Part shown: positions 42,216 through 63,203 of the stretch, piece after piece
Position numbering within the stretch: the first letter of the stretch is position 1
How the letters are laid out: each line of letters begins with the position of its first letter
Source: Epithemia pelagica
Taxonomy: Eukaryota; Protista; Bacillariophyta
Assembly (NCBI GenBank): GCA_946965045.2
Contig: OX337242.1
Span: 310,001-374,000 of the forward strand
Length of the DNA stretch: 64,000 bases
Direction: 5' to 3'
Translations under genes and position numbers: made by a program
The notes under the pieces: generated by a model
Told to the model about the DNA's origin: nothing
Seen by the model: the letters and a program-made list of their open reading frames with translations, nothing else
The model's database searches: none

Positions 42216-42932
42216 CTAGGAGTAGTACTGTTTCCACCATCCATAACTGGAGGATGATTCGACCGTCCATTCGTCATCGTCGCCTTGGAGGAGGACTGGC
42301 AAGGTGGTGGGAGTGGATCGCTGTTTGCTAAAATGAGCCGCCAAGGTCATCTTTGTGTTGTTGGTGCTGCTGCTGGTGCCAGTACTCGAACTTGGTTGCA
42401 GTGTTTTGGGATCATAAACATCGCCCAAGGTGGTTTCCAACACTGGATAGGACTCGTGTCGTCGTGGTCGTTGTGGTGTGGATCGTCCCGAACGGTGGTA
42501 CTGGTGGTGGTCACTGGTGTAGCAAACATCTGCCGTTCGTACCCGACGACCTGTCGTCAGGTTGAATTTGACGGCCGTACCGGAGGAAGACGAGGCTGGT
42601 GATGCTTTGGAACCGCATCTTTCCGTAGCCTCCACCAATTCGTGATTGAGTAGAATGAGTTCAAAGGCATCGCCTCGGCTCAACACTGCCACTTCTCGCC
42701 CAAACCATTGGTGGTGATGCTTCTTGTTGTCGTCGTCGTCGTCGCTGTTGGACACGTCGTGTTGTCGTTGCGGTTTTGCTGCGGCATGTGGTTTCGGTTC
42801 GTAGTAGTAAAGTGATGGTTGCTTGTCTTGGTTTGGCAGGGCCACACGAGGGTGGTTCTTTGGTTTGGCCCTGGTGGGCAAATGATGGGGATACATGGAA
42901 GATTTACTGGCCGTGGACCATGGCATGGTCAT
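42216..42932 (-). CDS. Cluster family A protein 1 (disordered, VAVLSRGDAFELI motif)
   Basis: Open frame from ATG 42932. Motif GREVAVLSRGDAFELILLN plus YPVLETTLGDVY. Confidence 0.7.
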   Translation of the reverse strand: MTMPWSTASKSSMYPHHLPTRAKPKNHPRVALPNQDKQPSLYYYEPKPHAAAKPQRQHDVSNSDDDDDNKKHHHQWFGREVAVLSRGDAFELILLNHELVEATERCGSKASPASSSSGTAVKFNLTTGRRVRTADVCYTSDHHQYHRSGRSTPQRPRRHESYPVLETTLGDVYDPKTLQPSSSTGTSSSTNNTKMTLAAHFSKQRSTPTTLPVLLQGDDDEWTVESSSSYGWWKQYYS

Positions 42933-43062
42933 GGATTCGAACCGATCCAACAAACAAACGTGAAACCACTGCGGCAAGGAGGATGAAGTGGATTGACGAC
43001 TGCAAGAAATTGGAATTTGGAGATGAATCGTCGTGTCCAATCATCATGCTCATTCCTGGTAT

Positions 43063-43227
43063 CATCCGTTGGACTGTGCTGTACCGTGACTGTTGAGGTT
43101 CTCTATACTCTCAACGTTCCCCTTCAACGGTTCCACTCACGTGCATAGACTCAAAGTTCTTTTGGTACTAGGTAGCATGCTCATGGTGTTCACCACACGG
43201 CGGTGCGCCGCCAACCTCCAACGGATG
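43063..43227. promoter_or_regulatory. MSA-like boxes in the divergent promoter of A1/A2
   Basis: catccgttgga at 43063, ttcaacggtt at 43123, tccaacggatg at 43217. Confidence 0.6.
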
Positions 43228-43638
43228 CGAGGCACATGGTCGAGGCGTGTACTTGTGTGACAGCGCGACGAGACTTGTTGGCATCAAGTTTAGTCGCCCT
43301 TAGATCACTCTCTCATAGGGTCATCAGCGTTTTGGAGTCGCGCATTATTGCAATGGTGTGCGCGGTGGATTCCAAAATTTGGATTCTTGCAACTGCTCCC
43401 AATCGAAAAAAACCTCCAGACGTTGAGCCCATCATCGTCGTCTCCAACCGTTTGGACGACTGCTGTAGACTTAACAAAAGCAACAACAACCACAAAGGTG
43501 TGGATTCGTGGCACGGTCACATCGCGTTAAGCCCTCGGAGAAGCTATTGTGTCCTTCTGGACGGTTCCACCTCGATATTGATTGCATCGGATTGTTGGTG
43601 GTTGAGGAGACGACAAGTACCTCAGTGTCATCGACACC

Positions 43639-45282
43639 ATGGTCCGTCGGGACGACGAAAGTGACCATGCCTTGTATGTAGCACAGTCGTTTCATCATCA
43701 TCATCATCATCGTCATGAGAATGAAACTGTAACAACCCACAGGAGCAGCAGCAACAAGAAAACGACAACAACACGAAAAAAGAAGAAGAAACAGGCTCCC
43801 TCTCCCAAGCAAATGGGAAGCATTGTCATTCTTCGTCAAGGGGAAGCCTTTGAACTCGTCAAAATGTACCCCACCACTCCTCCGACGACCAATTCGAGCG
43901 GTCCAACATCAACAACAAAAACCACCAAAACCACACGACGTCCTTCCAGTCCATCTCCAAGCAATAGGCAAGGTCCACAACGATCATCATCACCAAAGGA
44001 ACAAACTCGTCGTCCCGAAACACCCAAGGATATGCTCGACTTGACGGTGACTCCCACAATGGATACACGTGTCGTTCAAAATACCATTCACCCCAAACAC
44101 GACACTTTACTACCACCATCACCATCCCTGTATGCGGCCAACGAGGCGACTAGTTTTGATACCTTTACGTTGGATGTGGACCACATGGATGAGAATGAGG
44201 ACTGGGACATGTCAACTCCCGAAATGTCGTTGGACCGCACCCGAACACCAGACCAAACCACAAGGTCCCCCACAAGCATGCCCCAAACAACACGTTCACG
44301 ATCTCCTCCATTGCCAAGAGCCGCATCTCCTCCTCCTACAACGACTCCTCGACGAGACACGAATGGAATGGAACCCACCATCCGAATGACTTCTCGATCG
44401 GCCATGCAGAAGGAACGCAACAGTCCCAGTCGAACCAACACTCCTCCTCCTACTTCTTCTTCCAACCCCTGCATCTTGCGACGCGATGCCAGTGCCAATA
44501 GTATTTTGGAAACGGCATCGTCGTCTCGACCCGAAACTCCCGTTGCACGACAACCACCACCACAACCACAACGACCTCCCCCACGGTCTCCGACCCCCTC
44601 CATTGAGTGGAACACCAGCACTGCTACTACTCCGACGACTCGTGCGATGGATCCTCCCGACAGTCGTAGTAGTCCAGAGGACGAGACGGTGGCTCCTCAA
44701 CCATCACTCCTCCTCCCCACCCGACGCATTTTCCACACGGTTCAGGCAACCACCATGCCGCCACAGAGGCAGCAGCACCAGCAGCCACCAACACAACAAC
44801 AACCACAAAAGCAGCAGCAAAAGCAGCAACCACAAAAGGAGCAACAAGAACGCGGCACTGTACCAACCACCACCACTCGTCGAGTTTCGATTCAAGACAT
44901 GGATACCAAAGTAACGCAAATTGCGACGCAGCAACAGAAAGAACACGAACACAACGAGACAGACGATGATGACGACGATGATGATGAGGATGAAAGTGAG
45001 GCCTATGATCACTTTGATCAGGGCACGCTCGGTACGGGACCCTCGGACGACGACGATGGCGATGATTCCCTCATTACCTTTATTCAGCTCGACGAAGACG
45101 AAGATGATTCCTTGGTCCCCACGATTGGTGGAAACGGCGACGACGACAAGACGATTATTCCCATTTTAAAATGTGGAGCAAGTTGTGGTGCCACCTACGA
45201 ACTGATTGGTCTGAATGAAGACACGTACGAACTGTCCTGTGGACGTGGATGGATCAAACGATCTCGAGGATGGGGCACCTAA
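43639..45282 (+). CDS. Cluster family A protein 2 (Pro/Ser/Thr-rich disordered, terminal motifs)
   Basis: 547-aa ORF. N-terminal motif GSIVILRQGEAFELVKM; C-terminal motif IIPILKCGASCGATYELIGLNEDTYELSCGRGW. Confidence 0.85.
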   Translation: MVRRDDESDHALYVAQSFHHHHHHRHENETVTTHRSSSNKKTTTTRKKKKKQAPSPKQMGSIVILRQGEAFELVKMYPTTPPTTNSSGPTSTTKTTKTTRRPSSPSPSNRQGPQRSSSPKEQTRRPETPKDMLDLTVTPTMDTRVVQNTIHPKHDTLLPPSPSLYAANEATSFDTFTLDVDHMDENEDWDMSTPEMSLDRTRTPDQTTRSPTSMPQTTRSRSPPLPRAASPPPTTTPRRDTNGMEPTIRMTSRSAMQKERNSPSRTNTPPPTSSSNPCILRRDASANSILETASSSRPETPVARQPPPQPQRPPPRSPTPSIEWNTSTATTPTTRAMDPPDSRSSPEDETVAPQPSLLLPTRRIFHTVQATTMPPQRQQHQQPPTQQQPQKQQQKQQPQKEQQERGTVPTTTTRRVSIQDMDTKVTQIATQQQKEHEHNETDDDDDDDDEDESEAYDHFDQGTLGTGPSDDDDGDDSLITFIQLDEDEDDSLVPTIGGNGDDDKTIIPILKCGASCGATYELIGLNEDTYELSCGRGWIKRSRGWGT

Positions 45283-45451
45283 GAAAGAATGAATGAATAA
45301 ATGAGGCTACCCGATACCCAAGAACCGACATTCAATGTATATGATGATTCTAAGATAAGCGTTTGAAACAGCAGTGTTCTGTTTGCCCCAACAAGAATGG
45401 ATCCTCGTCGTCCTCTAGGGTCTCTACTCTAGGAGCATAACTGCAAAAGAC

Positions 45452-45649
45452 CCGTTGCTGCGGTTTCTGGGGTTCTGGTCGTCCAGTCGCTTAGCGACTG
45501 AAGCATTGCGTGCTGCGCGTGACGGACAAGTTCCCATAGATTTATGGTGACTTTCGCCGTATCCGTTGGACAGGACGCGATCGCAAAAAGGCAACGTTTC
45601 AACGGATCCATGGCCATAAATATTACTATAGCCGAGGATGTCAACGGAC
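45452..45649. promoter_or_regulatory. Four MSA-like boxes upstream of A3
   Basis: CCGTTG at 45452 and 45563; CAACGG at 45600 and 45642. Confidence 0.6.
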
Positions 45650-45896
45650 CAAAACGTTACAAGTTTCCCCATATAGATGAGGCTGGGAACGTTGGAAGAC
45701 AAAAAGTCTAAGAAAAGGACTGGCAACAAGGACAACCCGGCAGAGGAAGACCACAGAGATCGAGAGGTTCTTTATTCGTGGGCTTGAAGGGAGGAAACGA
45801 GGGGCCAATATAACAGATCAACATTTAAAGAACAGGGACCATCAATCAACACTTTTGAAATACGCAGTTGGATCTCTCTCTCTTTGGCACGAGACA

Positions 45897-47465
45897 ATGA
45901 CGGATGGAACGATTGCAACGTTCACTCCTACTGTATCCAAGCCAACGATGATACGATCCTTTCGCGACGACTCGTCGACGAGTGGATGGAGTTCGTCGGT
46001 CAAGACGGTGGCGTTGAAAAAGACGGAGTCGGGTCGGATTGTCATTTTGAGTCGAGGGGATACCTTTGAGCTGGTCAAACTCATTCCCGATTGGACTGAC
46101 AATGAAGACAATCAATCGGTGGTCAGTCGAGTCCCACAGGCTACCTTTTCCAGTGACAATAGTACCGTTGCGTCCATGATTATGAGTGAATCAATTACCA
46201 GACGAGCAAGGACCAAGCAACCCATTCGGTCCCCTGCCGATGCCAAGGTTGCAAAGCCAACGGTGTCGTTCAAAGATCCTCCCGACACGACATGGCATGT
46301 ACCAGCAACAATACCCGAGATGGAAAGCGTGGATGGCAGTGGATTCATGGAAGATGACATTGTACGAAAACACAGCTTTTCGGATGTGCGACTAAAAGAA
46401 GAAGAGGAGGAGGAAGATGACGACGAGGAGCACATCGACCACATTCACCAGGATGATTGGGATGCCAATGGCAGTGAAGAAGATGATAAGTATACAGTCA
46501 CTGAAGAAGAATCCAACCAGGAGGATGAAAAGAGAGACGACGTTACAAGGACATCGGCCTATGATGACGACAATACCAGAATAACTGCAGATGATGACGA
46601 TGATGATGATATCACAAGATATTCCATTGATGATCAAGTGGGAGGATCCAACACAGCGGTACGGCTCATTGTACGAAAACACAGCTTTTCGGATGTGCGA
46701 CTAGAAGAAGAAGAGGAGGGGGATGACGACGAGGAGCACGTCTACCACATTCACCAGGATGATTGGGATGCCAATGGCAGTGAAGAAGATGATAAGTATA
46801 CAGTCACTGAAGAAGAATCCAACCAGGAGGATGAAAAGAGAGACGACGTTACAAGGACATCGGCCTATGATGACGACAATACCAGAATAACTGCAGATGA
46901 TGACGATGATGATGATATCACAAGATATTCCATTGATGATCAAGTGGGAGGATCCAACACAGCGGTACGGCTCATTGTACGAAAACACAGCTTTTCGGAT
47001 GTGCGACTAGAAGAAGAAGAGGAGGGGGATGACGACGAGGAGCACATCGACCACATTCACCAGGATGATTGGGATGCCAATGGCAGTGAAGAAGATGATA
47101 AGTATACAGTCACTGAAGAAGAATCCAACCAGGAGGATGAAAAGAGAGACGACGTTACAAGGACATCGGCCTATGATGACGACAATACCAGAATAACTGC
47201 AGATGATGACGATGATGATGATATCACAAGATATTCCATTGATGATCAAGTGGGAGGATCCAACACAGCGGTACGGCTCAATCATCATACACGAAAGAAG
47301 GAGCAACAACGACATCAGGATGATGAGACTACAATGAACAGTGCCGTCGTTCCCTTTGTCCATTTTGGATCCGGGTTTGGCACAATGTATGAGCTCGTAC
47401 AGGTAAATGTGGACACACTGGAATTCTTTTGGGGAAGAGGTTGGGTAACGTACGACGCACCATAG
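45897..47465 (+). CDS. Cluster family A protein 3 (highly acidic, with a triplicated 102-aa block)
   Basis: ATG at 45897. N-terminal motif GRIVILSRGDTFELVKL; C-terminal motif VVPFVHFGSGFGTMYELVQVNVDTLEFFWGRGW. Confidence 0.85.
   Translation: MTDGTIATFTPTVSKPTMIRSFRDDSSTSGWSSSVKTVALKKTESGRIVILSRGDTFELVKLIPDWTDNEDNQSVVSRVPQATFSSDNSTVASMIMSESITRRARTKQPIRSPADAKVAKPTVSFKDPPDTTWHVPATIPEMESVDGSGFMEDDIVRKHSFSDVRLKEEEEEEDDDEEHIDHIHQDDWDANGSEEDDKYTVTEEESNQEDEKRDDVTRTSAYDDDNTRITADDDDDDDITRYSIDDQVGGSNTAVRLIVRKHSFSDVRLEEEEEGDDDEEHVYHIHQDDWDANGSEEDDKYTVTEEESNQEDEKRDDVTRTSAYDDDNTRITADDDDDDDITRYSIDDQVGGSNTAVRLIVRKHSFSDVRLEEEEEGDDDEEHIDHIHQDDWDANGSEEDDKYTVTEEESNQEDEKRDDVTRTSAYDDDNTRITADDDDDDDITRYSIDDQVGGSNTAVRLNHHTRKKEQQRHQDDETTMNSAVVPFVHFGSGFGTMYELVQVNVDTLEFFWGRGWVTYDAP
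46359..47279 (+). repeat. Coding tandem repeat, 3 copies (309, 306, 306 bp), near-identical
   Basis: attgtacgaaaacacagc starts at 46359, 46668 and 46974. Confidence 0.97.
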
Positions 47466-47790
47466 TGGCTGCGACAAATCCACCAAAAGGGAAGGGGATG
47501 GGGGTGATCCATCATGTAGCTAGCAAATACTCGCGCTTCAAATTTTGTAAATTTGTTGTACTTGGAATGAAAGGCATTCCATTAGCAGTCATTCTATCTC
47601 TTTAGAGCACCCTTTGCGATCAAATAATGTTCAACTCCCATGGTCTCCGAAGCAACAGAACTACGGATAGCCTTCCAAGTCACACATTTTTCCTGGTCTT
47701 TTTGGCTGCACCTAGTCTAGCATCGGACAGAGAAAAGAGAGGGTAGGTTATAGAACATGACCCATTAGATAACGACTTAGAGAAGGTATC

Positions 47791-48024
47791 CATCCGTTGA
47801 GCACGTCCGGAGGGTTTTGTTACCTACCCCCAAGCAGGGGTGAGTCCAGTCCCGCGTGTCTGAAAGCACGACATGTGAGTAAGAGAATGTACCTTTAGGT
47901 ACGACTTATGTGCGACCTGGACTCACCCCTGCTTGGGGGTATTTTGTTACCGCAATCGCGCACATCCTGGACCATGTCCAAACATGCGGCAACAAATGGA
48001 CTTAACAACAATCAGTCCGTTGGA
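47791..48024. promoter_or_regulatory. Two MSA-like boxes upstream of A4, flanking the MITE
   Basis: catccgttga at 47791 and gtccgttgga at 48015. Confidence 0.55.
47825..47941. mobile_element. 117-bp MITE with perfect 25-bp TIRs and a 10-bp target-site duplication
   Basis: TIR tacccccaagcaggggtgagtccag (47825-47849) and its exact reverse complement (47917-47941). ttttgttacc is duplicated at 47815-47824 and 47942-47951. Confidence 0.92.
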
Positions 48025-48163
48025 TGCAAGTGTTGTTGTTATAGCACGAAGGAATAATCGGCTGTCTTTTGCAAGTCATGGAAGGTTCTGTTGAACAAAG
48101 AAACGTCTTGTCAGTTTGCTCCTCCAAGGTCTTGTTGGACCATTGCTGGAAACCATCCGCACC

Positions 48164-49342
48164 ATGGTAGTTCCAAGTCACTCGTCGTTTCGCGCCTCAT
48201 CCTCTCGGCAATCGTCGTCGTCTTGGATGACGGGTCGTCGAGAATGGCATCCTTCGACCGATTGGTATCCCACCCGCACTAGTGACCCGAGTTTGGTCGA
48301 ACAAGATGCCATTGCGGTCGGTTTGCTTCGTCACACGGCAGAGGAGGACGAAGCCGATTGGTATCCCATCGCCAATTCGTCACCCGAAGAACGATATCGT
48401 TCCACGACCATCCTCCAAGAAGAAGAAGAAGAGGAGGCGGATCATCAAAACTGGTCCTCGACCTCCTCCGCCAACGCAAGTCATTCCGGAACGAATGCTG
48501 TCAGCAAGCATCGTCGACACAAACCGCAACCAACGAACAATGACACTAACCAAGATGAGGATGAAGACCGAAATGTCCCGGACGAAACAGAACGCGACAC
48601 TCGTACACCAGACAAGACAACGCAAGACACGAGAACCACCACGAGGAATCATCCGACGAAATCAAGGGACACAGACAGAGACCGTGTCCTGAAAGAAGAA
48701 GAACAAGACGAGCAACAAGAAGAAGAACAGGATATGCGAGAGGACGATGATCAATCGCTCCATTTACGATCGGTAGCACTCGTGGCGCCAGATTCCGAGA
48801 CGTATGCGCTCATTCGAGTCAATACCAGCACGAAAGAAAAGGTTCAAAAGTGGAAGCGACGGCAACAAGAAAGGGGTTCGTTCATGTCCGGTAGTAGTAA
48901 TAGCAGCACGGTCGAAGAAAACGACTCTGGGGACCAGCCGCCGCAGCCGTACATGCAGGACAGTGCATCGCATTCCTCGTCCAAATGCGGGGTGACCACC
49001 AGGAAGAGTCGAGACGACTACTCGTGCAGTCACTACACGGACGCAGGAACCTGCAGTTCCCAATCCTGGACCAATCTCCAGCGCATGCAACGGTCCAGTT
49101 CGCTCCCTCTGTTCCGGTCGGTCCCACAACCCCAAAGCGGCAGCAGCAACAGCAACAAGAGTCACCCAAATCCTTTCGGTGGTTCGTCCATGACGAGGAG
49201 AACGTCTTCAAACCAAAGTGCCCCCTCCCGCAGTCGTACCGGAAAGAGCCTCGGCGGTCCAGCAAAATCCAAAGATCGCACTCTACCACTACGCAAGGGA
49301 AGAAGTCTGGGTGACTTCCTTTCGAAAAAGACTCTTCGGTGA
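48164..49342 (+). CDS. Cluster family A protein 4 (disordered, one degenerate motif)
   Basis: Open frame from ATG 48164. RSVALVAPDSETYALIRVNTST resembles the family-A C-terminal motif. Confidence 0.75.
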   Translation: MVVPSHSSFRASSSRQSSSSWMTGRREWHPSTDWYPTRTSDPSLVEQDAIAVGLLRHTAEEDEADWYPIANSSPEERYRSTTILQEEEEEEADHQNWSSTSSANASHSGTNAVSKHRRHKPQPTNNDTNQDEDEDRNVPDETERDTRTPDKTTQDTRTTTRNHPTKSRDTDRDRVLKEEEQDEQQEEEQDMREDDDQSLHLRSVALVAPDSETYALIRVNTSTKEKVQKWKRRQQERGSFMSGSSNSSTVEENDSGDQPPQPYMQDSASHSSSKCGVTTRKSRDDYSCSHYTDAGTCSSQSWTNLQRMQRSSSLPLFRSVPQPQSGSSNSNKSHPNPFGGSSMTRRTSSNQSAPSRSRTGKSLGGPAKSKDRTLPLRKGRSLGDFLSKKTLR

Positions 49343-49345
49343 TTG

Positions 49346-49869
49346 GTCCGTTGATTCATTGTGCTTCTTGATGCTATATGGTATTTATATTAGTAGGAGT
49401 ATATCGTTGATTGGGTTATAGGAGTAGTTTTGCGCAAGCATTGTCTTTATTAGAGAGCGACTACGGAAAGGGATCGTTTTCTTTTGTGTCCGTCGAATAG
49501 GTAGCATACCTAGAGTTTCTAGCACTCCGTCTGTAGGATGTCGAAAATTCGCAGCGAACTGACTGTCTGCGACTGACTGACTGTTGTGGGTGTCTATGCG
49601 AGCTCGCCGCGCACCCACAACGCATCCAACCGCCAATGGCGCACAGTTCGTCTAACTGAGCCTCTATGTAGGCAAACGTTTGGAAGATGGGGACAATACG
49701 CAAACGTACCATGGACTTAGCAGGACGATGGCGCACTGATAAGAAAGAGGGAGGAATCGGTGGTGTGGAAAAGAGAGTAGTTGTTGGATGGCCACTCTCG
49801 GTATCGTCGTTCAACCTCCGGAAACGATTGCCGGATTGTAATATTGCTTGGCGCTTGGCATCCGTTGGA
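49346..49869. promoter_or_regulatory. MSA-like boxes upstream of B1
   Basis: gtccgttga at 49346 and catccgttgga at 49859. Confidence 0.55.
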
Positions 49870-49960
49870 TTATTTTTACCATCTTCACCTCCCACCGCAA
49901 CGACCAGAATAACAACTTCTACCGTGCCATTCTCTTGTTGTAAAATTTGGAGGTTGGACC

Positions 49961-52253: not shown

Positions 52254-52493
52254 TGTTTAATCGAATATAATTTATGTTAACTGTGTATATATGCATCCAT
52301 TTCTCTTAAGCGTCACATTGTGTCGAAAAACATCCTGAAAGAACGACTGGGTGTGGTTAAGGACAATAGGATCCTCTAGCCTATTGAAATACATAGCATA
52401 GGTAGTCTTTGATGAAATAATAGGTGTACTCCTAGGAGTAGTTAGATAGAATAGAGGAAGGTAGCAAAAGATACCCTCTGAAGTACGAAGATG

Positions 52494-52565
52494 CATCCGT
52501 TGAGCATGGGATGTCACCGATATCAACTTTGGGCAACACTTTTGCATCGAGCATCCCAATAACGG
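52494..52565. promoter_or_regulatory. MSA-like boxes upstream of B2
   Basis: catccgttga at 52494 and taacgg at 52560. Confidence 0.5.
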
Positions 52566-52951
52566 TAGAATGGCAGTTGAATGGATTGATGCCACATAGA
52601 ACCAAAAACCAGACATCCCCCAACGTACGAGGGATATTAGACCATAGCGGTCCGTTTATTTCTTTGCCGTACACAGCGCACCCAATTCTGACACTCGTGA
52701 GAGTATGGCTTCTATCTATGATGCTATCTACGAATGTCTTGTGCGGCTCTTGCAGAAATGTCGATGAGTGACAGCCAAGCCGTTCCGGGATGCACCGAAT
52801 TTAAGAATTGCCATGAAAGAGTTGTGACGGTTGAGCTGCGTCAAGGAATTTTTCATTCACCCAAACGCTTTTGCACCACAAAGAATAGACCCATTTGTCG
52901 TGTCGTCTCATTCCTGAAAGCATATTCACAGTCACCAAGGGCAACATTTCC

Positions 52952-54409
52952 ATGAGGGTTGAGCGACGAAACCAGAAGGCATCCGACGATGCGACCATGA
53001 TTGTGGACCCCACTGCGTCCTTGAGCTTTTCGGGAGCTGCTCCGGCTACAATGAAGCGTTCGAGCTTGTCAAGGAAGCGGCAACAAGTTCCACTTCGTCG
53101 ACTGGACACGAGAAGAGGTCCCTCTGCCATGGCAGGATCAGCGAGGACTGCACAGCAGCCAACAAGAAGAAAGGCAGGCAAGGGTCGCTGGAGACGAAAT
53201 GTTGTCAAGAATGTATCACAACGACACATTCCAAGTCTTCCTGTGGTTCATGAAGAGGAGAGTATGCCCGAGCTGCCGATTGAAACAACACCGGAACTGC
53301 CTAGAGCGACTCTTGCTGTTATAAAAGCCGCTCCATGGAGTGAAACTTCCTCCTCCTCCAAGTCGTTTGTCGAAAATACAATCGAAGGTGTCATGAAAGA
53401 AACGAACAATGCCATCACGTATATCAATACCGATGCCCAAAAGGATCTTTCTTCGAATTTCAATGCGGTGAGTGCCTCACTCTCGGATTCCTTTGGATAC
53501 ATTGAGAGTTATGTGATGAAGCCTCCCTCTCTCCGATCTACCGCCGGGGAAAAGTCCAACCAACAAGGTTCGTTTGACGTCATTGCCCGTCTACGAGAGG
53601 AGTCCAGGCTCGAAGATGAAGCCATGATGAAAACACAACGAGAATCAAGAGATGAGAACAGGGACTCGTCGGATGATATTATCGCCCCAATCACTTTTGC
53701 ATCGGATGCGCAAGATTATTTCCCGGAAGAAACAGAGGAAGAGACAGAAACCCATGACCACAACCAGGAACGAGACGCTGCTCCAGATCTTGAAGAGTCC
53801 GTTGATGACGAAAGGAATGAGGAATCTACAGAAAACGAGGCAACCGATATAATTCCTGTCGGTGAGATGCTCCGTATCCATGACTCTAGTTCGGATGTGG
53901 AGATTATTGCGAGTTTTATCAATGCCCAAGTCTCTCAGTCCCATGTGGAAGTTGTCATGAACTGGACCCATTCTGGACTTGAATCAGTTTCAAGTGCTTT
54001 GAGCAGCTTTGGCAAGTCCCAACTCGACTCATCCTCTCATGACATGGCAGAAGACTCAGACGATGAGGATTCGGTGGCATCGGAGGAACCCATTGTTGTC
54101 ATTCCGACCGACACTACAGAAACCGAGTTGGTGCTCAACAAGAGTTCGGAGGAACCCATTGTTGTCATTCCAACCGGCACTACACAAACCGAGTTGGTGC
54201 TCAACAAGAGTTTGTCCAACGACGAACAAAGTTCCACATCTCAAGACAGAATGGACTTTTCTTTTCAAGACACGTGGACGAAGACTGCCGAGATTATGGG
54301 CTTGAGTTCTCCACATGACACGAGCTCGGATCTCAACCATGCCGCCTTGATGAATCCACTTGCTCTTATAAGGCAAGCCAGGACTGAAGAAGATTCCCAA
54401 GGACAATAG
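52952..54409 (+). CDS. Cluster family B member 2 (basic N-terminus, acidic disordered body)
   Basis: Open frame from ATG 52952. KAGKGR...IPSLPVVHEEE resembles B1 KLGKGR...IPAALPAIREDD. C-terminal QDTWTKTAEIMGL. Confidence 0.8.
   Translation: MRVERRNQKASDDATMIVDPTASLSFSGAAPATMKRSSLSRKRQQVPLRRLDTRRGPSAMAGSARTAQQPTRRKAGKGRWRRNVVKNVSQRHIPSLPVVHEEESMPELPIETTPELPRATLAVIKAAPWSETSSSSKSFVENTIEGVMKETNNAITYINTDAQKDLSSNFNAVSASLSDSFGYIESYVMKPPSLRSTAGEKSNQQGSFDVIARLREESRLEDEAMMKTQRESRDENRDSSDDIIAPITFASDAQDYFPEETEEETETHDHNQERDAAPDLEESVDDERNEESTENEATDIIPVGEMLRIHDSSSDVEIIASFINAQVSQSHVEVVMNWTHSGLESVSSALSSFGKSQLDSSSHDMAEDSDDEDSVASEEPIVVIPTDTTETELVLNKSSEEPIVVIPTGTTQTELVLNKSLSNDEQSSTSQDRMDFSFQDTWTKTAEIMGLSSPHDTSSDLNHAALMNPLALIRQARTEEDSQGQ
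54080..54211 (+). repeat. Coding tandem repeat, 2 x 66 bp (SEEPIVVIPTxTTxTELVLNKS)
   Basis: Units start at 54080 and 54146. Confidence 0.93.
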
Positions 54410-54841
54410 TCCAAAGTCATTCAATGCTCTTAATGAGTGACAAAGTTCCCACGTCAAAGGTAACCTTCGTGTCCATCCTCGGCACAATTCGTATATGTCC
54501 TATCTTTGGATCTACTTGTGTTTTGTTCATAATATGATAAATTCCTCTCATTTTGCCCATTCTATTCCATAGAGACTCCATGATAACTCTACCCGTCTGA
54601 TTATTTCATTCGCACAAGCGACCACCAGAACGGAACCAAATCTCAAAGCAGTCGCACTGTCTGTCACAGAGATCTATGCCCTTCTCGTTAGCGATTGCAC
54701 AATTCCTTATGCCCCATGGCAGACGCATGTCAAAAATGGCCCGGATAAGTGAATGGGCTTCCGTCTGAAATACGTTGACTCCCTACCAATCTTTGTTGTT
54801 ACTTATGAAGTTAAATGTGTTCATTGTCTAACTCTTCTTTG

Positions 54842-54927
54842 TCAACGGACAACATTGTCGTATGTCCACGTCTCAGACGACAACATTCATAAGTAAATCC
54901 GACCGTTGACCGAGAGGAGCCAACGGA
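54842..54927. promoter_or_regulatory. Three MSA-like boxes upstream of B3
   Basis: CAACGG at 54843, CCGTTG at 54903, CAACGG at 54921. Confidence 0.55.
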
Positions 54928-54954
54928 AAAGGACATCCGGCCAGCAGGCCTATT

Positions 54955-57900
54955 ATGACCATGCTCATTATTTCATTTTTGTTGAGCATCCATCACGTGT
55001 CCGCCTTCTTCTTTTATGCACATGATTCATTCTGCAATCTTGTAGTGTCAAACTCAGAAACGCATTCACATTGGAGGCCACAAAGAAGCTTTGGAGAAAA
55101 AATGGAGCGCTCTCGTTCGAGAGAAAATGATGATGGTATGGAGTCCAGTGCAGAAGAAGTCGTAAGCACTCATTCCATGAAAGGATTCTTCCTCGATTAT
55201 CATGCAAGATCGGCTGAGGAAAACCACTCCCCAGAAGAAGACAGGTTTGTGGAGCATTCAAAGGAGAGGGAAAGTTCTGATGAACGAGATGAGCCACTTG
55301 TGGAAGATCAACAAGACTCTAGTTTGGCCGAGAATTTGGAGCTGAACCAGTCAAGGGGTAGCGAGCAGCAAGACTGCGAGGTACAACACAACGATGACCT
55401 CTCATCGCAGTCGCAAGATTCTCCTTTTACAAATGAAGAGCAAGGAGACACAACCGAAACGGGGGACCAAGACATCCAAGAGGACAACGATGGACAAATC
55501 ACTAGTACGCCGAGCAAAGCAGGCAACGACGAATCCAAGACACAGGAATTGGTACAAGTCGACTCTTTGAACACTACATCTAGCTCTACATCTATTCGAC
55601 GTGTTGTGGGTTTGACTGGTCGAATCCGAAGTTTCTTGAAGGGAGGAAAGCATGAAAAGCTAGATTCCAAGGTATCGACTACAGCAACCCGACAAGATTC
55701 GAACCCAATGGACAAAACGGTTGCACGCACAGACATGCTAGACGTTCCGGTACAAGAGAGCAGCGTCCCATCCAACGAACTGGAAAAAGTTGCAACAGAA
55801 GAGGATCTCACAAAGTTGATTGAGCAAATCAAAGGGTTTATCGATTCAATCGGTATTTTCATGAAAACCCGTCTTTCTCAAGAAGTGACGGCGATGATGC
55901 ATCAGTCAGAAATTCAAGGGCCTTCGACATCGGATGTAACTTCGGTGGCCAATGATGTTGCGGGTTGGATGAAGGACAACATCCAGCGCTCATCCATTCA
56001 GGCATCTTGGTGTCAAGGGGACAATATCAAATCCATGACACAAGGCTTTGGTTGTGGTTCAAACGACAGTGAGAAGGACTCCATGGCTCATGGTTTAGTT
56101 TGTGGCCCAAATTACAACGCAAATGAGTTACACAAATCTCCTGATTTGGATCTACTACTCAATCGATTCTACGACGCAGTTGGTGTTATGGAAGCATCCG
56201 TGGATGTCATTGTTAAAATGCCGGGGAGGGTCACGAATGATATCCAGAAAACATGGAACGAATGGAGTGCCCAGCTTTCGTGGATCCGAACCGAGGCGGA
56301 AACGAAACAATGGGCAGCAATTGAAGGCGGTCAGGATTTTACAGAGGAGCTGTTGAAGCATCCTCTTCCAGTCCTCCATGTGGATCAAGCTGTGGAAGGC
56401 GAACCAAAGGATGCAACCGATGGTGTCCAGAAGACAGATGTTTCGCCTAGAGGAAAAGATTCTTCATGTTCCTCATTGGCAAGCAATGCATGCTCAACAA
56501 AAGCTTCTTCTTCTGTGAAACGGGCACCACCGAAGAAGAACAAGCCACACAAAAGCAAGGAAGAACAGCCACGTAGTCGTTCTTCTGGGTCTTCGAAACG
56601 CCTTTTCCGTTTCAGTTTTGCGAAGAGCAAGCGAAAGACACAAGACCCCTCGTCGGTATCGGGCAGTACGAAGGATCAGAAACAAGAGGACGAGGCAGGC
56701 TTACCAGTGGACAACAGTAACAACACTGTCGCTAAGGCGTCCAAGCCCGTAGAGAGCGCGTCTGGGGAGAGAACTATCCAAGAAGAGGACCTTGAGAAGC
56801 GGTCTCACATTGATTCACATGTCAAATCGACTCCAAAGCACCAAGCAGATCAAGAAGACGACACGGTCACAGATGGAAAACTCAATAAGACATGCTTGAA
56901 TACTTGCATGCCGGACGAACAAGAACCTTTGTGCTGTGCTCCTTTTGCTTGTGGTAACAATGCCGAGCTGGAAACTACGGACCAAGACGATATCTCAATC
57001 ACTTTCACCACGGGGGATGTGGCAACTGAGGCCCCCTCCTTGGCGGATGCCAAACCCACCAACATCACTGAGAACCCACAAGTCGAAAGCACCGTACAAG
57101 ACAACGAAGAATCAATGGAGGATCGCGTGGAAAGTGGTTCCACAAAAGCTAAATCTGTCAGTGCCGTAAGGTCATTTTTCTCGTTTTGGAGTGTAGCCGA
57201 GCCAGAAAAGAATCATGATAAAGAGATTCCAGAGTCTCAGGAAGAGGCTTCTCTCCAAGCGGATCTTGTCAAAGAACCAAATGTCACCACTACCACAACG
57301 GATCAGGTGGAGAATTCATCGACGCAAGAGCAGGCAGAAACTTCATCTAACGACGGAGTCCATGATATCAAAGAAAATGGAAGTCAAGACAAGAATGTAA
57401 GCGATGTAGACCAACAGGACGACATGTTGTGTGCACCATTCGTATGTTGTAATACCGAGCCTGAACCCGTTGACGAGGAAGACAACATTGTGAGTCCCAG
57501 TACTCCAACGTCCCAGCTAGAATTTGAAGAAACAACTACTGTGACCGAGCCTTCTAAAGTCAGCAACATTCCGACAGAGAAAGAATCGATCAAGGACCAC
57601 CTAGAAGATACGAATGGAAACCCTCCATTAGAAAAGACAAAACGCAGCAAGGGCGGGAAACGCGGAAAAAGCTTCTCCAAGGGAATGCACTCTATATTTT
57701 CTCGGTCTCATAGATCAGGCAAAGTCCGGAAAACCAAGAAAGCTATTCCAGTTGAGAATCTAGATGACCGAGGAAATCCCAGCGCAATTGAAAAGGAGGG
57801 CGCAGACTCCAAATCAGCTAGCACAACAACCGCTGCCAATGCTTTGGTTGATCCATCTAATGTGAAGAAGTCGTCTGACAACCGTAGTTGGGGTAAGCCA

Positions 57901-59298
57901 TCCCAAGGGACAACGAACACTTCGAATGAGAAAGGTACAACTGTGGATGCTGTCGAGCAAAGTGCGGAGAAAGCCACAAAAGATATGGAAGTGGAACATT
58001 CCAATGCAGTGACCATGTCGGAAATCAACAGCCTATCCATTGAGGAACACCCAGCCGATGAAACAACAGAAAATGCCAAAGCTGTGCTTCTCAGGAATGA
58101 CCTTTCTCCTGACACGGAAGAAGGAAACAAAAGTGAGGCAATGAATCAGCAGACGATTATCCCGCCAACATTCCAAGGCGAACCACAGCCATCCGAAAAC
58201 AATACAACAAAAATGGCGGAAGACACGGCGGATTCCTCCAGTAAACGAAGCTCTTCCAAGTCGAAAAAGAGAGGCTTCCAATTCCGAGTGAAAAAGTCTT
58301 TAGTGGAACCTGTTGTTATGGGCACGGAAGAAATTGAAACAAAACGTGGCGTAGCAAAGTTCGCAGGTTCTCTCAAGGCCAAGACCATGAATTCAATCTC
58401 AAGCAAGAACTTTGGTCCATTATCTAGAAAGAAGAAACATGAACAGAAAGAGAAATCGGACGATACCGTCACGACAACCCAAAATACAGCCGTCACCGAG
58501 AAGGATGCTCTACAAGTCATTGTACCAAGTGGGCGTTCGACCATGGGTCAGGGTTCCAAGGTTGAAACTGAGAAGACCAGCCGACTCGGGGCTTTGGCTC
58601 AAGGAACGGAGCGTTCAGTCCAAGGAATGGTTGACAAAGACGAAAAGGTCACGACGGATTCTCAAACTTCACACATGGCTCCACCTGAAACAGTGAGAAG
58701 TACCTCGAGAGGATCCGACTCCCGTGGCGAGAAGAAAAGAATCCAGTTTGTAGATCAACTAGAGGAATTCGACGATCAGGGGATCGAAAGGGTTCTCTCG
58801 TCTACCGTTGATACATTAAGGTATGAATCGAAGGAAGGAAAAGACAAGCAATCCGTTACACCATCGACAACAAAGAACAATGAGCGATCCGAAAAACTAG
58901 ATGAAACCAAACAGGAAATGACCGAAGATGACAAAGGAATTGAGCTGACAGTTAGCAAGAGCGCGTGGGATGGACCGTCGTTTGTCCCACTCAACCAGGC
59001 ATCAATGGAATCGGAAGGTTCAGACGGAGGTGATGACGATCCATTGTTGCCGAGACCCGAGTCGTATGACACGGGAGATTCCCGATCGCAGCATACCAAT
59101 ATTCTCACTGATACCTGGCAAACAGCGACCGAGTTGATGTGCTCACGACAAGGCGAAGCGGACGTGGACGACTCGAGTGAAGTCACTCCGGTGGATGCCG
59201 CATTCTTTGACAAGGCACTGGCGGCTACCACAAAATCGTGGATGCCCTGGGGCAAAAAGAAAGTCCCCAAGAAACTAACATTTGTCGGATTGCCCTAA
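54955..59298 (+). CDS. Cluster family B member 3, ~1400-aa acidic disordered protein
   Basis: Uninterrupted 4.3-kb ORF with uncertain start (ATG 54955 or 55102, or a small upstream exon 54862-54892). C-terminal DTWQTATELMC...DDSSEVTPVDAAFFDKAL. Confidence 0.85.
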   Translation: MTMLIISFLLSIHHVSAFFFYAHDSFCNLVVSNSETHSHWRPQRSFGEKMERSRSRENDDGMESSAEEVVSTHSMKGFFLDYHARSAEENHSPEEDRFVEHSKERESSDERDEPLVEDQQDSSLAENLELNQSRGSEQQDCEVQHNDDLSSQSQDSPFTNEEQGDTTETGDQDIQEDNDGQITSTPSKAGNDESKTQELVQVDSLNTTSSSTSIRRVVGLTGRIRSFLKGGKHEKLDSKVSTTATRQDSNPMDKTVARTDMLDVPVQESSVPSNELEKVATEEDLTKLIEQIKGFIDSIGIFMKTRLSQEVTAMMHQSEIQGPSTSDVTSVANDVAGWMKDNIQRSSIQASWCQGDNIKSMTQGFGCGSNDSEKDSMAHGLVCGPNYNANELHKSPDLDLLLNRFYDAVGVMEASVDVIVKMPGRVTNDIQKTWNEWSAQLSWIRTEAETKQWAAIEGGQDFTEELLKHPLPVLHVDQAVEGEPKDATDGVQKTDVSPRGKDSSCSSLASNACSTKASSSVKRAPPKKNKPHKSKEEQPRSRSSGSSKRLFRFSFAKSKRKTQDPSSVSGSTKDQKQEDEAGLPVDNSNNTVAKASKPVESASGERTIQEEDLEKRSHIDSHVKSTPKHQADQEDDTVTDGKLNKTCLNTCMPDEQEPLCCAPFACGNNAELETTDQDDISITFTTGDVATEAPSLADAKPTNITENPQVESTVQDNEESMEDRVESGSTKAKSVSAVRSFFSFWSVAEPEKNHDKEIPESQEEASLQADLVKEPNVTTTTTDQVENSSTQEQAETSSNDGVHDIKENGSQDKNVSDVDQQDDMLCAPFVCCNTEPEPVDEEDNIVSPSTPTSQLEFEETTTVTEPSKVSNIPTEKESIKDHLEDTNGNPPLEKTKRSKGGKRGKSFSKGMHSIFSRSHRSGKVRKTKKAIPVENLDDRGNPSAIEKEGADSKSASTTTAANALVDPSNVKKSSDNRSWGKPSQGTTNTSNEKGTTVDAVEQSAEKATKDMEVEHSNAVTMSEINSLSIEEHPADETTENAKAVLLRNDLSPDTEEGNKSEAMNQQTIIPPTFQGEPQPSENNTTKMAEDTADSSSKRSSSKSKKRGFQFRVKKSLVEPVVMGTEEIETKRGVAKFAGSLKAKTMNSISSKNFGPLSRKKKHEQKEKSDDTVTTTQNTAVTEKDALQVIVPSGRSTMGQGSKVETEKTSRLGALAQGTERSVQGMVDKDEKVTTDSQTSHMAPPETVRSTSRGSDSRGEKKRIQFVDQLEEFDDQGIERVLSSTVDTLRYESKEGKDKQSVTPSTTKNNERSEKLDETKQEMTEDDKGIELTVSKSAWDGPSFVPLNQASMESEGSDGGDDDPLLPRPESYDTGDSRSQHTNILTDTWQTATELMCSRQGEADVDDSSEVTPVDAAFFDKALAATTKSWMPWGKKKVPKKLTFVGLP

Positions 59299-59978
59299 GT
59301 ACGTGTGTGATTGGTCCTGTCCCTGTGACTGTGTGTGGAAGAGAAAGTCACTTTTGGATGATGACGCCATTGTCATCTTTGATCTCTAGATCGCTCTTGG
59401 TTCGTTGTGTGACTCCCTACCTTAAGCTTTCTTCTGTGAGGGTAGCCATGCGCTCGATAGACTCTCATGAGCGTCAGTCGCTCATAGATCTCGAATGTAA
59501 TATTGTACTGTTGTTAAGAGAAATGCCCAATAGTAGTATATAAAGATGGGTAATATTGTAACGTTCCTAACCGTAGATTCAGATGATTCCCTGCTAAGTA
59601 CGACGTTTTGCCCCTAAGTAACAGATAGTGCCCTTCGAAATCCACGTGACGTATCCTACATTAGAATAGAGACTTTGTGTACATTAGAAAGACCAATTTG
59701 GTCTTGATCGTGTATAACATTTTATCAAAAACAAAAATTTGGCGAGGAAAATTGTAAGCTCACCTAAGTACTGGCGGGCTGCGAGCGGAACGAAAGGATC
59801 GATCCACCCTATTTGTTTTTCTCAGTTTCTCGCAAAAACAACTTTCATCCTCCATGGACCCCTTCCTTGATCCAACGAAACCAACATCAACAAAAAAACT
59901 ACACAGTTCTCGTCCTCCGCATCGAAAAAGCAAGTCAGTCAAACCGGAGAGAGAGAGAGGACGACGCAACGAGTTGCC

Positions 59979-62900
59979 ATGATGCGACGACGTTGGTTCG
60001 TAAAGAATCGACAGGCGGTCAAGGAGGAGAAGAAAGTGGAAACATCCATTAACCCAGCCGCCTCCTTTGAGTTGGTCAATAAATCAAACCGACGTAAGGA
60101 CAAGAAAAACAAATCATCCACAGCTCGTGCGGTGGAGGCACCATCGAAAGAGCAACCACAGTCTCAGGAACAGCGAGATGAAATCAGTGGTAGTGCCGAC
60201 CGAGAACCAAGCAAAGTACCTGAGCGAGACAAAGCTCCCTTGAAAACGCATGCAGATTTTTTTCTTCACTCCATGTCCCTCGAAGAAGAGGAACTGGCCA
60301 AGACTCTCGGAAACAAGAACACAGTGAATGTATCCAGAGCCTCCTCCTCCAACAGATGTGCTTCACCGGAACCAACCACCACGTCTCATGCGGACTTTAT
60401 CCTTTCGACGCTCTCGCAAGAACAGGAACAACAAGCTCTTGTTGCCGTACTATCGGCCGTGGAAGCACTCAAAGCCAAGTCCCAAGATGCAGTGTCCAAT
60501 TTGGCACAAATTGTATCTGCCATTGACAGCATTGAAGAGTCACCCGACTCCTCCGATGGACGAGCCATGGTCTCTGTGCTCCCCAAGTCGGATGCTCCCT
60601 CCATTCCCAACTATGTGGAGGCAGACGAAGACGGGGATGACGATATTGTCTCCAACGAGAACAACACTCTTACTTATCAATCCATGACTGCGGGAGAGCG
60701 CCTGACACGATTCGCAGGATGCATGGTTCCCATGGCCTTAGTCGGTGGGTGTGCTGGAGATGAATTGAAGACCACCGAGTCGGTCGATGCCGAAATTGCC
60801 GCGGCAACAAAGGCACAGAAAAAGACCAAGGACAAAAAGAAGGTACATGGAAAAGCAAAACGTGAAGACAAATCAGAACCACCCAAAGCGCCTCTGGACA
60901 AGTTGGTGGATACTATGGAAGATCAAATCAAGGGTGTGTTTGGAGAATCGGGGGAACTCGGGAACCGACCAAGACATGCCAAGAGTAGTGCTGTACAAGG
61001 CTCTCCGTCCGGCAGCACTGCTCCAGAAAGCGACGTGGAAGAGGAAGCGGCGCCTTCTGTTCCTGCACAAGAAGAAGAACAGGGCATGTCGGATGACTCG
61101 GTCACTGAGCTTGAAACGCCAGCAGCTCCGGTGGCCATATCGACCACTGAAGCCAAAGCCATGGAGGATATGATTCGAGCCCAGCGGGAAATGGGTCTAG
61201 GTTCTAGAATGCGCCTGGAAGTAGTCAAAGAGGAGGAAGAAAAACAGCTGCTCGAAATGAAGACGACATCCAAGTCGGAAGATATGACGGTATCGTTTGA
61301 TTCGTTGTCGAAATCGAATTCTCGGACCGTTGTCAGGTCCATGACCAAAGACTCCTTGAACGCTATTGACGAACATGCCGAGCAGGAGGATGATCAGGCA
61401 AAGGAGCAGAAATTAGAGACTGTCGACGAACTTGTATCACAGACCGGAAAGAAAAACAAGAAGGCCGCTGACTCATCCAAGAAAAGTAAGAGAGGCAACC
61501 GGTTGTTTAAAGGAGGAGGAAAACCGTGGAAGACTAAAATGCAATTCTCGTCCAAAGCCAAAAATATGGACGCCGCTGTGGACACTGAATCAGATGCTGA
61601 AGTCAACCAACCAAAGCCTGAAGAAAAGACACCGGAACCATCCGTGCAAGAACAAATGTTGCCTCCCCATCCTCCTCAAGCCAAGAAAAACATACTGGAC
61701 GAGAAGAAATCACAGATTGAAACTGATCATTCGCTGGAAGAATTGCCAACTACGGAGAGTACCGTTTCTGTTGAATCAATCGTTGAGAAACTCAAGCTAT
61801 ACAATGAAGCTAATCGATCCGGCTCATTGGACGAAACGGATGGCTTCTTGAAAAAATTGGAATCGGACAAGGCGACTTCCCGAAAGGAGGCAAGCCCGAA
61901 CACGCGAGGTCACGAAGAAGGCCGTCTGGCGGAGACCCAATCGGGATCCACCGACTCTTATGATATGAATCCTATCCCAAAAGACACCCCAACGTCTCAG
62001 CCCTCACCCGTCGAAAACAAGGAGGTTATTGGCGGAGTAGTCGATGAGTCGGGTACCGCGGAAAAAGCAAGAAAAGAAGGCAGAGGAAGGAAAAAGAAAA
62101 GTCGTACCGCAGTCGATGGTAAACCTCCGAGACCTGCGCGACGGGCCACCGGAGAGAAGAATCTCAATCCCGTTATCGTGTCCAGCACTTCCAGAGATTC
62201 CGATAGTGCATTCTCCAACAAATCCGCGAGGTCGAAAAATTCGGATGCAGGTTCGAAAACCAAAAAGAAGACTCGACGAAACAACTCAATGGACACAGCG
62301 TCTTCGAAATCGTCTCAGAGCTCGTCCGATTCAATCGCTAAACATCAGGACAAGCAACAAGAAGAACCTCCTCTATCTGTCGGCGCAGACTCACCAGCAA
62401 CGGTAGAACCGTCGGACCGAAAGACGAAGCGCCGGTTTGCTGGTGGAAAACGTTCCGAACAAACTCAAGAGAAAGGAGGCCGTCGTCGATTGAAAGGCTT
62501 TCTACGATCCGCCGTGGGACAAAAGTCGAACAATAACAATACTCAAACCATTGACAATGCCTCGGGACCCGCCAACCACAGCAACGAAATGAACCTGGAT
62601 GACAAAACTGGTTCCAAGGCTGCAGAGAACACCCGCAGTGCTTCTCCGGTCGAAGATGTCCCTCAAAAGACCTCATCAGCTGCGAATGACAGTGAAAGTG
62701 ACTGTTTTAGTGGTGTCGTCTCATCTGAAGAAGATGATAAAGACATTGTCCCAGACGCCGATACGAATCAACTAGTGTTATCAGTAAAACAAGTGAGATC
62801 GTCAGCGATTGAAATCACCACTGCCGATTCGATGGACTCAGAGCTAGCGTCAGCGTTGCTGGAACAATCATCGTCCCGACTGACGGAAGTATCTTCCATG

Positions 62901-63203
62901 GGAGCTGACTCCATGATGGACGAGGAAGTTGATGCGTCCTCCTGGAAAGTCAGCGTTCTAGACGGAGATACTTGGAACGCTGCAATCGACTTGTTGGGAA
63001 TATCCAGGGTGATGGGATGCGAGTGTCAAGATGACACGAGTCAAACAACCCCCGTAAATGCACAATTCTTTGACAATGCCATGACGGATTCGGCCCGTCA
63101 TGTCATGTCGCCCTGGTGGAATGATGAACGTCGATCCCGCCGAAAACCGTCCTCACGCAAGAGCCGTTCCAGACATTCCTATTCCGCATATGACCGAAAC
63201 TAA
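59979..63203 (+). CDS. Cluster family B member 4, 1074-aa disordered protein
   Basis: Uninterrupted ORF. Internal repeat (T/S)HADFxLxxxSxExE and a short coiled-coil-like segment. C-terminal DTWNAAIDLLG...DDTSQTTPVNAQFFDNAMTDSA. Confidence 0.85.
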   Translation: MMRRRWFVKNRQAVKEEKKVETSINPAASFELVNKSNRRKDKKNKSSTARAVEAPSKEQPQSQEQRDEISGSADREPSKVPERDKAPLKTHADFFLHSMSLEEEELAKTLGNKNTVNVSRASSSNRCASPEPTTTSHADFILSTLSQEQEQQALVAVLSAVEALKAKSQDAVSNLAQIVSAIDSIEESPDSSDGRAMVSVLPKSDAPSIPNYVEADEDGDDDIVSNENNTLTYQSMTAGERLTRFAGCMVPMALVGGCAGDELKTTESVDAEIAAATKAQKKTKDKKKVHGKAKREDKSEPPKAPLDKLVDTMEDQIKGVFGESGELGNRPRHAKSSAVQGSPSGSTAPESDVEEEAAPSVPAQEEEQGMSDDSVTELETPAAPVAISTTEAKAMEDMIRAQREMGLGSRMRLEVVKEEEEKQLLEMKTTSKSEDMTVSFDSLSKSNSRTVVRSMTKDSLNAIDEHAEQEDDQAKEQKLETVDELVSQTGKKNKKAADSSKKSKRGNRLFKGGGKPWKTKMQFSSKAKNMDAAVDTESDAEVNQPKPEEKTPEPSVQEQMLPPHPPQAKKNILDEKKSQIETDHSLEELPTTESTVSVESIVEKLKLYNEANRSGSLDETDGFLKKLESDKATSRKEASPNTRGHEEGRLAETQSGSTDSYDMNPIPKDTPTSQPSPVENKEVIGGVVDESGTAEKARKEGRGRKKKSRTAVDGKPPRPARRATGEKNLNPVIVSSTSRDSDSAFSNKSARSKNSDAGSKTKKKTRRNNSMDTASSKSSQSSSDSIAKHQDKQQEEPPLSVGADSPATVEPSDRKTKRRFAGGKRSEQTQEKGGRRRLKGFLRSAVGQKSNNNNTQTIDNASGPANHSNEMNLDDKTGSKAAENTRSASPVEDVPQKTSSAANDSESDCFSGVVSSEEDDKDIVPDADTNQLVLSVKQVRSSAIEITTADSMDSELASALLEQSSSRLTEVSSMGADSMMDEEVDASSWKVSVLDGDTWNAAIDLLGISRVMGCECQDDTSQTTPVNAQFFDNAMTDSARHVMSPWWNDERRSRRKPSSRKSRSRHSYSAYDRN

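Follow-up and report, generated by a model that had tools for sequence, protein, structure and literature searches.

Several described systems resemble parts of the locus considered here, a tandem array of genes for low-complexity proteins that begins at position 42216 of a 64,000-nucleotide stretch of Epithemia pelagica DNA (GCA_946965045.2, contig OX337242.1, positions 310,001 to 374,000, forward strand; hereafter "the window"). The closest in regulation are the plant MYB3R regulon of G2/M genes, which is built on mitosis-specific activator (MSA) elements, and the targets of animal B-Myb–MuvB. YAACGG (e.g., CAACGG) is the canonical Myb recognition core, and plant MSA elements occur in multiple copies, in either orientation and close to start codons. 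The closest in type of product are the diatom silaffins and cingulins, which are lineage-specific, clustered, repetitive and fast-evolving low-complexity proteins rich in Ser, Lys and acidic residues. The closest in organism is the Myb network (Myb3R5) of the diatom Cylindrotheca closterium, in which Myb motifs in 500-bp promoters predict stage-specific expression and many targets are uncharacterised genes, as they are here, although that is a different species and the paper's text gives no motif sequence for comparison (bioRxiv 10.64898/2026.03.25.714157).

The array shares with the plant and animal regulons a set of genes with a common element, which has a C before the AACGG core, is present in multiple copies near gene starts and is used in either orientation. 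It differs from them in two respects. First, the element here is YCAACGGAY, with an A after the GG in 11/11 boxes, whereas the plant MSA consensus is YCYAACGGYYA. Second, the MYB3R and MuvB regulons contain conserved mitotic targets (e.g., cyclins and kinesins), whereas the genes here are lineage-specific orphans. The array is like the silaffins and cingulins in clustering, lineage restriction, repetitiveness and fast evolution. Unlike silaffins, however, g1 to g6 and g8 of the eight genes in the window (g1 to g8) show, on inspection by eye, no N-terminal signal peptide, and no lysine-cluster or RXL motifs were seen in the same way; the motifs that define the two protein families of the array (A and B) are unrelated to silaffins and cingulins. 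It is this pair of motif families that is new, while a taxonomically restricted, co-regulated tandem array is a familiar kind of locus.

We think that the locus is probably a birth-and-death tandem array of orphan genes for disordered proteins, co-regulated through a Myb-type DNA box. The evidence for this comes from motif families that detect one another, from a second copy of the locus, from a second species and from the spacers between the genes.

Two motif families in a tandem array

Open reading frame (ORF) calling places eight consecutive units in 42216-63203, seven of them on the + strand, which agrees with the first-pass annotation of this DNA. Family A comprises g1 (42216-43040, - strand), g2 (43639-45282, +), g3 (45855-47465, +) and, marginally, g4 (48116-49342, +). 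Family B comprises g5 (49961-52253, a decayed unit), g6 (52895-54409), g7 (54955-59298) and g8 (59979-63203), all on the + strand. The products have 64-76% polar or disorder-prone residues and are net acidic except for that of g1. The array appears to consist of taxonomically restricted, intronless genes for acidic, intrinsically disordered proteins.

The ORF-to-ORF spacers from g1 to g8 measure 598, 572, 650, 618, 641, 545 and 680 nt. The uniform spacing of ~0.6-0.7 kb that had been reported therefore holds within g1 to g8 (545-680 nt), but spacers downstream of the window range from 556 to 899 nt, so the regularity is real, not exceptional. The cluster had also been taken to end at 63203, and this proved wrong: g9 to g13 lie past the window end (g10 in family A, g12 and g13 in family B, g9 and g11 unclassified), giving an array of at least 30 kb that continues for at least 10 kb beyond the window. 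Both proposed families are real, but they are not confined to two blocks, as had been thought, because they interleave along the extended array (g10 being an A gene).

The family A motif is ~20 aa long (phi-x-phi-L-x2-G-x2-[FY]-E-L-phi-x-phi-[NP]) and usually stands at both ends of a linker. Family B proteins share an end module of ~65 aa (DTWxxAxELLG ... SQxTPVxAxFFDxA ... PW, then a basic tail). All-vs-all BLASTP links g2 and g3 at both the N-terminus (29 aa, E = 2e-4) and the C-terminus (34 aa, E = 1e-8), g1 and g3 over 18 aa (E = 0.005), and g7 and g8 over 62 aa (E = 5e-6); by BLASTP, g9 is not related to g8. The regular expression [FY][EA]L[VI].[LVMI], which captures the A core, has eight matches in 110,143 aa of six-frame translation, and all eight fall in g1, g2 (two), g3 (two), g4 and g10 (two).

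We also built leave-one-gene-out hidden Markov models (HMMs) of the motifs. With these, g1, g2, g3 and g10 (family A) and g5, g6, g7, g8 and g12 (family B) each rank first of 1,494 fragments, and 0/29,880 shuffled fragments score as high. The window allele of g4 fails this test, as does g9. Cross-detection above shuffled controls, which the first-pass annotation had proposed as a check on its families, is thus found for g1 to g3 and g5 to g8 but not for g4 as it stands in the window. The other allele of g4 reads YELI in place of YALI and scores 7.4 bits, with 0/2,000 shuffles as high, so on sequence grounds g4 is probably a weak member of family A. The array thus contains adjacent, same-orientation paralogues that are detectable above shuffled controls, as expected of a tandem family. 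These paralogues have only short motifs in common, with no DNA-level similarity left between genes or between spacers, which bears out the suggestion that the tandem expansion is old.

Database searches place the array proteins in no known family. A Pfam scan of g1 to g8 gave no credible domain: its one formal pass, Cu-oxidase_2 in g3 (24.7 bits), was judged spurious, as it sits inside the acidic 3x306-bp repeat of that gene and has no relative in the Protein Data Bank (PDB). PDB and Rfam searches with array sequences gave no match. The earlier view that the proteins have no recognisable catalytic domain is consistent with these results, and neither Pfam nor PDB assigned any member to an unrelated family, an outcome that had been named as counting against the cluster. 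Word-indexed homology searches with the g8 C-terminus, the family A alignment and the 225-aa family B alignment returned only proteins of the same genome. Two metagenome scans (one for the TPVDAAFF/DTW patterns, one for the GxxFELVK pattern) found no relatives, Atlas feature searches with g10 and the g8 C-terminus scored at most 0.78 and were uninformative, and neither family has a matching Atlas cluster.

A profile of the B C-terminal module was more productive: among 1.84 billion representative proteins it has nine matches at E <= 1e-3. Six are genes of the same genome and their alleles, and two (P0006 and P0008) belong to assembly GCA_051400955.1. The other, P0004, is a Cys-rich repeat protein which looks like a false positive, and we do not count it as a family member; the other 8/9 matches come from two assemblies only. 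GCA_051400955.1 carries three B genes in tandem on the same strand. The C-terminal 86 aa of g8 aligns with P0006 at 45% identity (E = 7e-20), and both proteins have a duplicated N-terminal THxDFFL motif (in g8, THADFFL/SHADFIL, i.e., T/S-H-A-D-F-[FI]-L, at 60243-60272 and 60381-60410), while the rest of the two proteins cannot be aligned. Across species, therefore, conserved motifs do stand as islands in free linkers, as had been proposed. P0006 adjoins long minus-strand ORFs resembling a retrotransposon integrase and polyprotein, near a contig end (region L002 7976-11445). No other genome with family A was found by homology searches, by metagenome pattern searches or in the flank of the second-species array.

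Some features of the B module recall known short motifs. Its second helix has an acidic tract followed by FFD, as do the VAP-binding proteins with a motif of two phenylalanines in an acidic tract (FFAT, core EFFDAxE). We rejected FFAT as an assignment because the B members read FFD-[NKDQ]-A-[MLI], with N, K, D or Q rather than A at position 5 and a hydrophobic rather than acidic residue at position 7, and because the segment is predicted to be helical. Another candidate is a role for family B as regulatory subunits of protein phosphatase 1, in which RVxF and DxW motifs would be combined with an acidic linker. An RVxF-like sequence and an acidic run do lie upstream of DTW in g7 (KKRIQF, with the acidic stretch, at 58732-58776), g12 (KRTVQF), g13 (KRVAF) and P0008 (HQVRF). 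However, g5, g6, g8, g9 and P0006 have no RVxF motif at that position, and the strict form is present in g7 and g12 only (that of g13 is loose), i.e., two occurrences vs 0.74 expected from shuffles (P = 0.16). We therefore regard a phosphatase-subunit role as highly doubtful.

AlphaFold2 draws the A motif, modelled in g10 alone, as strand-turn-strand (predicted local distance difference test [pLDDT] of 44, ~40 in the motif), and it draws the B module, modelled from nine sequences, as two separate helices (pLDDT 65, predicted template modelling score [pTM] 0.23). Both models are consistent with motifs that would fold on binding. Families A and B are two unrelated motif families of disordered proteins, previously undescribed.

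A second copy of the locus: constraint, birth and death

A second copy of the locus, on ctg1353l of the same assembly, is 92.6-98.8% identical to the window and is probably the other haplotype. Comparing the two copies shows whether the ORFs behave as genes. In g1, g2, g4 and g7, 16/16 indels between copies are multiples of three (including 3/3 in g1, 7/7 in g2 and 5/5 in g4). The ratio of nonsynonymous to synonymous substitution rates (dN/dS) is 0.39-0.88 for array genes (e.g., 0.45 for g1, 0.47 for g2, 0.50 for g4 and 0.43 for g6; 0.45-0.88 across g1, g2, g4 and g7) vs 0.30 for a neighbouring control gene. The array genes other than g5 are therefore real coding genes under relaxed purifying selection, and they change fast outside their motifs.

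The exception, g5, is split over four overlapping + strand frames (49961-50818, 50595-51617, 51401-52024 and 51999-52253) instead of forming a single ORF, and its B C-terminal motif lies at 52041-52250. Against the second copy, 5/7 of its indels shift the frame, and the second copy also has an in-frame stop. A third allele, in sequencing run X4, has only a +G after 50966, which is a third combination of g5 indels. RNA-like contigs from runs X3 and X4 cross g5 without a splice joint. Our conclusion is that g5 is a frameshifted relic and not a spliced gene, and that it is transcribed if these contigs are RNA, as they seem to be.

Copy number also differs between the haplotypes. The acidic middle of g3 is a 3x306-bp tandem repeat (46358-47280), but in the second copy it has one unit, giving a 316-aa product. 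A 1.9-kb segment with a further 400-aa family B gene (L004 7080-8984) is present only in the second copy, with its insertion point near window-equivalent 71881, and a 480-nt segment of the g3-g4 spacer (47496-47975) is missing from that copy. With g5 decayed, three g3 repeats vs one and an extra B gene in one copy only, the array is under continuing birth and death.

Synonymous divergence between the copies is not even: it is 0.05-0.17 in the A half (40916-49542) vs 0.006-0.024 in the B half (49582-62235). This drop points to the edge of a haplotype block near g4/g5, or to gene conversion there in the past.

A Myb-core box in the spacers

The pattern YCAACGGAY occurs 13 times in the window vs 3.2 expected, and 12/13 occurrences lie within 43064-54850. 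Eleven full boxes are in the spacers (2, 3, 2, 2, 1, 1 and 0 from g1 to g8), so the reported presence of a common DNA box in six of the seven is correct. When the spacers are scanned for k-mers without a preset pattern, with the window's first 42 kb as background, CAACGGA comes out as the top 7-mer (12 vs 0.56 expected, P = 1e-12), and by dinucleotide shuffle the 12 cores in 4.3 kb of spacers compare with 0.76 expected (P = 4e-11). Full boxes are 101-615 nt from the next start codon, in either orientation, and cluster mostly 100-420 nt upstream of it, with up to three per spacer.

The boxes are largely retained in the second copy. The divergent g1/g2 spacer has two (43064, -, and 43218, +; 43064..43226), both kept. 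Three lie 214-294 nt upstream of g3 (45561, -, 45599, +, and 45641, +; 45561..45649), and all three cores are kept despite a 10.6% difference in the spacer. Upstream of g4 there are two on the - strand (47792 and 48015; 47792..48023), of which 48015 is kept and 47792 falls within the missing 480-nt segment. The g4-g5 spacer has two, also on the - strand (49346 and 49860; 49346..49868). The g6 ORF is preceded at 400 nt by a single box (52495..52503, -), which is kept despite a 10.4% spacer difference, and just upstream of g7 there is a full box at 54842 along with a bare CAACGGA core at 54921 (54842..54927, +). In total, 10/11 boxes are present in the second copy, the eleventh being the one in the 480-nt indel. 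Only 1/90 box positions changed between copies vs 1.6-10.6% of the surrounding spacer (P(no change) = 0.002).

Boxes of this kind could be relics of one promoter that was duplicated along with its gene. This is ruled out by the sequences around them: the flanks of the box copies are unrelated and the spacers have no DNA similarity to one another, so the boxes are not leftovers of a duplicated promoter. The core also recurs in the second species, where each of the three B genes has a single CAACGGA in its upstream region (chance of all three, P = 0.008). A shared Myb-core cis-element in the promoters, as first claimed by the first-pass annotation, is therefore strongly supported by enrichment, by retention in the second copy and by recurrence across species. 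Outside the cluster, the sole copy of the core in a promoter-like position is at 35117-35123, just upstream of a gene for a DUF6824 protein (32457-35060, -).

Given a functional element, its reader need not be a Myb protein: the box could serve another factor family, or it could mark the boundary between tandem genes. Only the 6-nt core fits Myb sites, and the conserved positions around it (a preceding Y, a following A[TC] and often ATG) are outside the Myb consensus. The box at 49346 directly follows the g4 stop codon. On the other hand, YAACGG is the canonical Myb core, and an activator site better explains boxes that lie 100-420 nt upstream of start codons in up to three copies per spacer. 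A non-Myb role for the element thus seems distinctly unlikely to us.

What we favour is the tandem array with a Myb-type switch, and it would work as follows. A Myb-type factor of the R2R3 or R1R2R3 kind (core YAACGG) would bind the box YCAACGGAY and switch neighbouring genes on together. The conserved A and B motifs would serve for docking or self-association, folding when they bind, with the linkers between them acting as spacers. Co-regulation of the array genes through the shared box is plausible.

The first-pass annotation went further and proposed that the array is expressed in one MYB-driven phase such as G2/M, cytokinesis, gametogenesis or auxospore formation. In its full form this reading would have an R1R2R3-Myb act through an MSA-like element on genes for scaffolds of division or sexual structures. 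The CAACGG core, in several copies of either orientation ~100-600 nt from start codons, fits this. So does work on Cylindrotheca closterium, in which Myb motifs and Myb3R5 are tied to meiosis and gametogenesis, Myb motifs predict expression in both, and Myb targets include an excess of M-phase genes (bioRxiv 10.64898/2026.03.25.714157). By analogy, those findings make a cell-division or sexual-stage role a reasonable idea for this locus. A literature search for the mitosis-specific activator in diatoms had no match. Several observations point the other way. The flanks of the box depart from the plant consensus, with an A after GG where plants have Y. Sites for cyclin-dependent kinases (CDKs), KEN boxes and destruction boxes (D-boxes) are not enriched in the array proteins. 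The array genes are represented, without introns, in RNA-like assemblies of three samples, presumably ordinary bulk cultures, which argues against strictly sexual-stage expression. We therefore consider a dedicated G2/M or sexual-stage module unlikely.

A more elaborate version combines that idea with the protein motifs: the array would be a structural toolkit particular to its lineage, and a 3R-Myb would turn the whole block on at a single phase (mitosis/cytokinesis or gametogenesis), with A hairpins and B helices docking long acidic linkers onto a conserved partner. This is speculative, and we rate it slightly lower again.

A number of points count against our preferred reading of a Myb-controlled array of motif-bearing proteins. 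No box is present in the spacer that precedes g8, so the co-regulation of all eight genes that had been proposed is not borne out. The spacers upstream of g9 to g12 have none either, with box density at chance level beyond the window. The box pattern was first defined on the same spacers in which it was then counted, which the k-mer scan and the second species mitigate in part. In GCA_051400955.1, the 10 kb that precede the B array contain no family A member. The structure models are of low confidence, with pTM ~0.2. The contrast between conserved motifs and free linkers, which holds across species, is not seen between the two copies of the locus, where 7/205 motif residues and 118/3,190 linker residues have changed, at a divergence too low to tell the two apart. 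Finally, the X3 and X4 contigs were taken as RNA from their depth pattern (zero depth in spacers), their RNA nature being our inference and not on record. Four runs were found, none of them a time course, and contig depth is no measure of expression.

At the opposite extreme, the array might be nothing special, i.e., unrelated orphan ORFs or transcribed junk with motifs and a box that arose by chance or from composition. The proteins are indeed of low complexity with no domains or named homologues, and g5 is indeed a relic. However, cross-detection of the motifs beats all shuffles, every one of the 16 indels noted above is in-frame, family B is conserved and in tandem in a second species, and the box is both enriched and conserved between copies. 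This explanation is largely refuted, and we give it hardly any credence.

The tandem array with its Myb-type box is useful in several ways. It is a compact natural test bed, consisting of seven adjacent ~600-nt promoters with no sequence in common except a Myb-core box, which selection seems to retain. It defines two new motif families of disordered proteins, one of which is found in tandem in a second species, and its haplotypes differ through gene birth, decay and changes in copy number. Should expression link the box to a single phase, the orphan genes would serve as markers of, and entry points to, that phase. If the 3R-Myb toolkit were true, it would mean that diatom-specific morphogenesis is built from clustered, disordered proteins that evolve fast and answer to an ancient Myb switch.

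Individual genes and genomic setting

Within family A, the coding sequence of g1 is 42216..42932 on the - strand (first ATG at 42932), with the A motif REVAVLSRGDAFELILLNHELV at 42633-42698. The coding sequence of g2 spans its whole ORF (43639..45282, +), and its A motifs at 43816-43872 and 45154-45261 enclose a disordered middle rich in Pro, Thr and Ser. For g3 (coding 45897..47465, +) the two motifs are at 46032-46088 and 47346-47453, i.e., on either side of its acidic repeat. A single motif, SETYALIRVN, is present in g4 (coding 48164..49342, +), at 48764-48829.

Within family B, g6 (coding 52952..54409, +) has its DTW..AEIMG motif at 54242-54406, with a degenerate second helix, and a 2x66-bp repeat at 54080-54212 which encodes PIVVIPT..TELVLNKS. 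An RNA-like contig spans 52947-54562. In run X3, a separate contig over the g5-g6 spacer and the start of g6 (52400-53139) has ~6x the depth of the remainder of g6 (748 vs 132), and this could be a separate abundant transcript, possibly from the other strand.

The largest product is that of g7 (54955..59298, +; 1447 aa), with its C-terminal B motif at 59083-59295 and an RNA-like contig that starts at 54924. The g7 N-terminus (54955-55050) is hydrophobic, reading MTMLIISFLLSIHHVSA and then FFF; it resembles a signal peptide with Phe just past the likely cleavage site, and it is the only such N-terminus among the family B members. Plastid targeting in diatoms follows the pattern ASAFAP, which this N-terminus recalls. 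All four runs have an additional in-frame GCC after 54983. The last gene in the window, g8 (59979..63203, +; 1074 aa), has its C-terminal B motif at 62940-63155.

The array sits in DNA of even composition, with a guanine-cytosine content of ~0.49 along the whole window. Genes upstream of it include those for a dynamin-like GTPase, CAF-1 subunit A, an organelle-type Ile-tRNA ligase, an ankyrin protein and the DUF6824 protein, DUF6824 being a diatom-centred domain.

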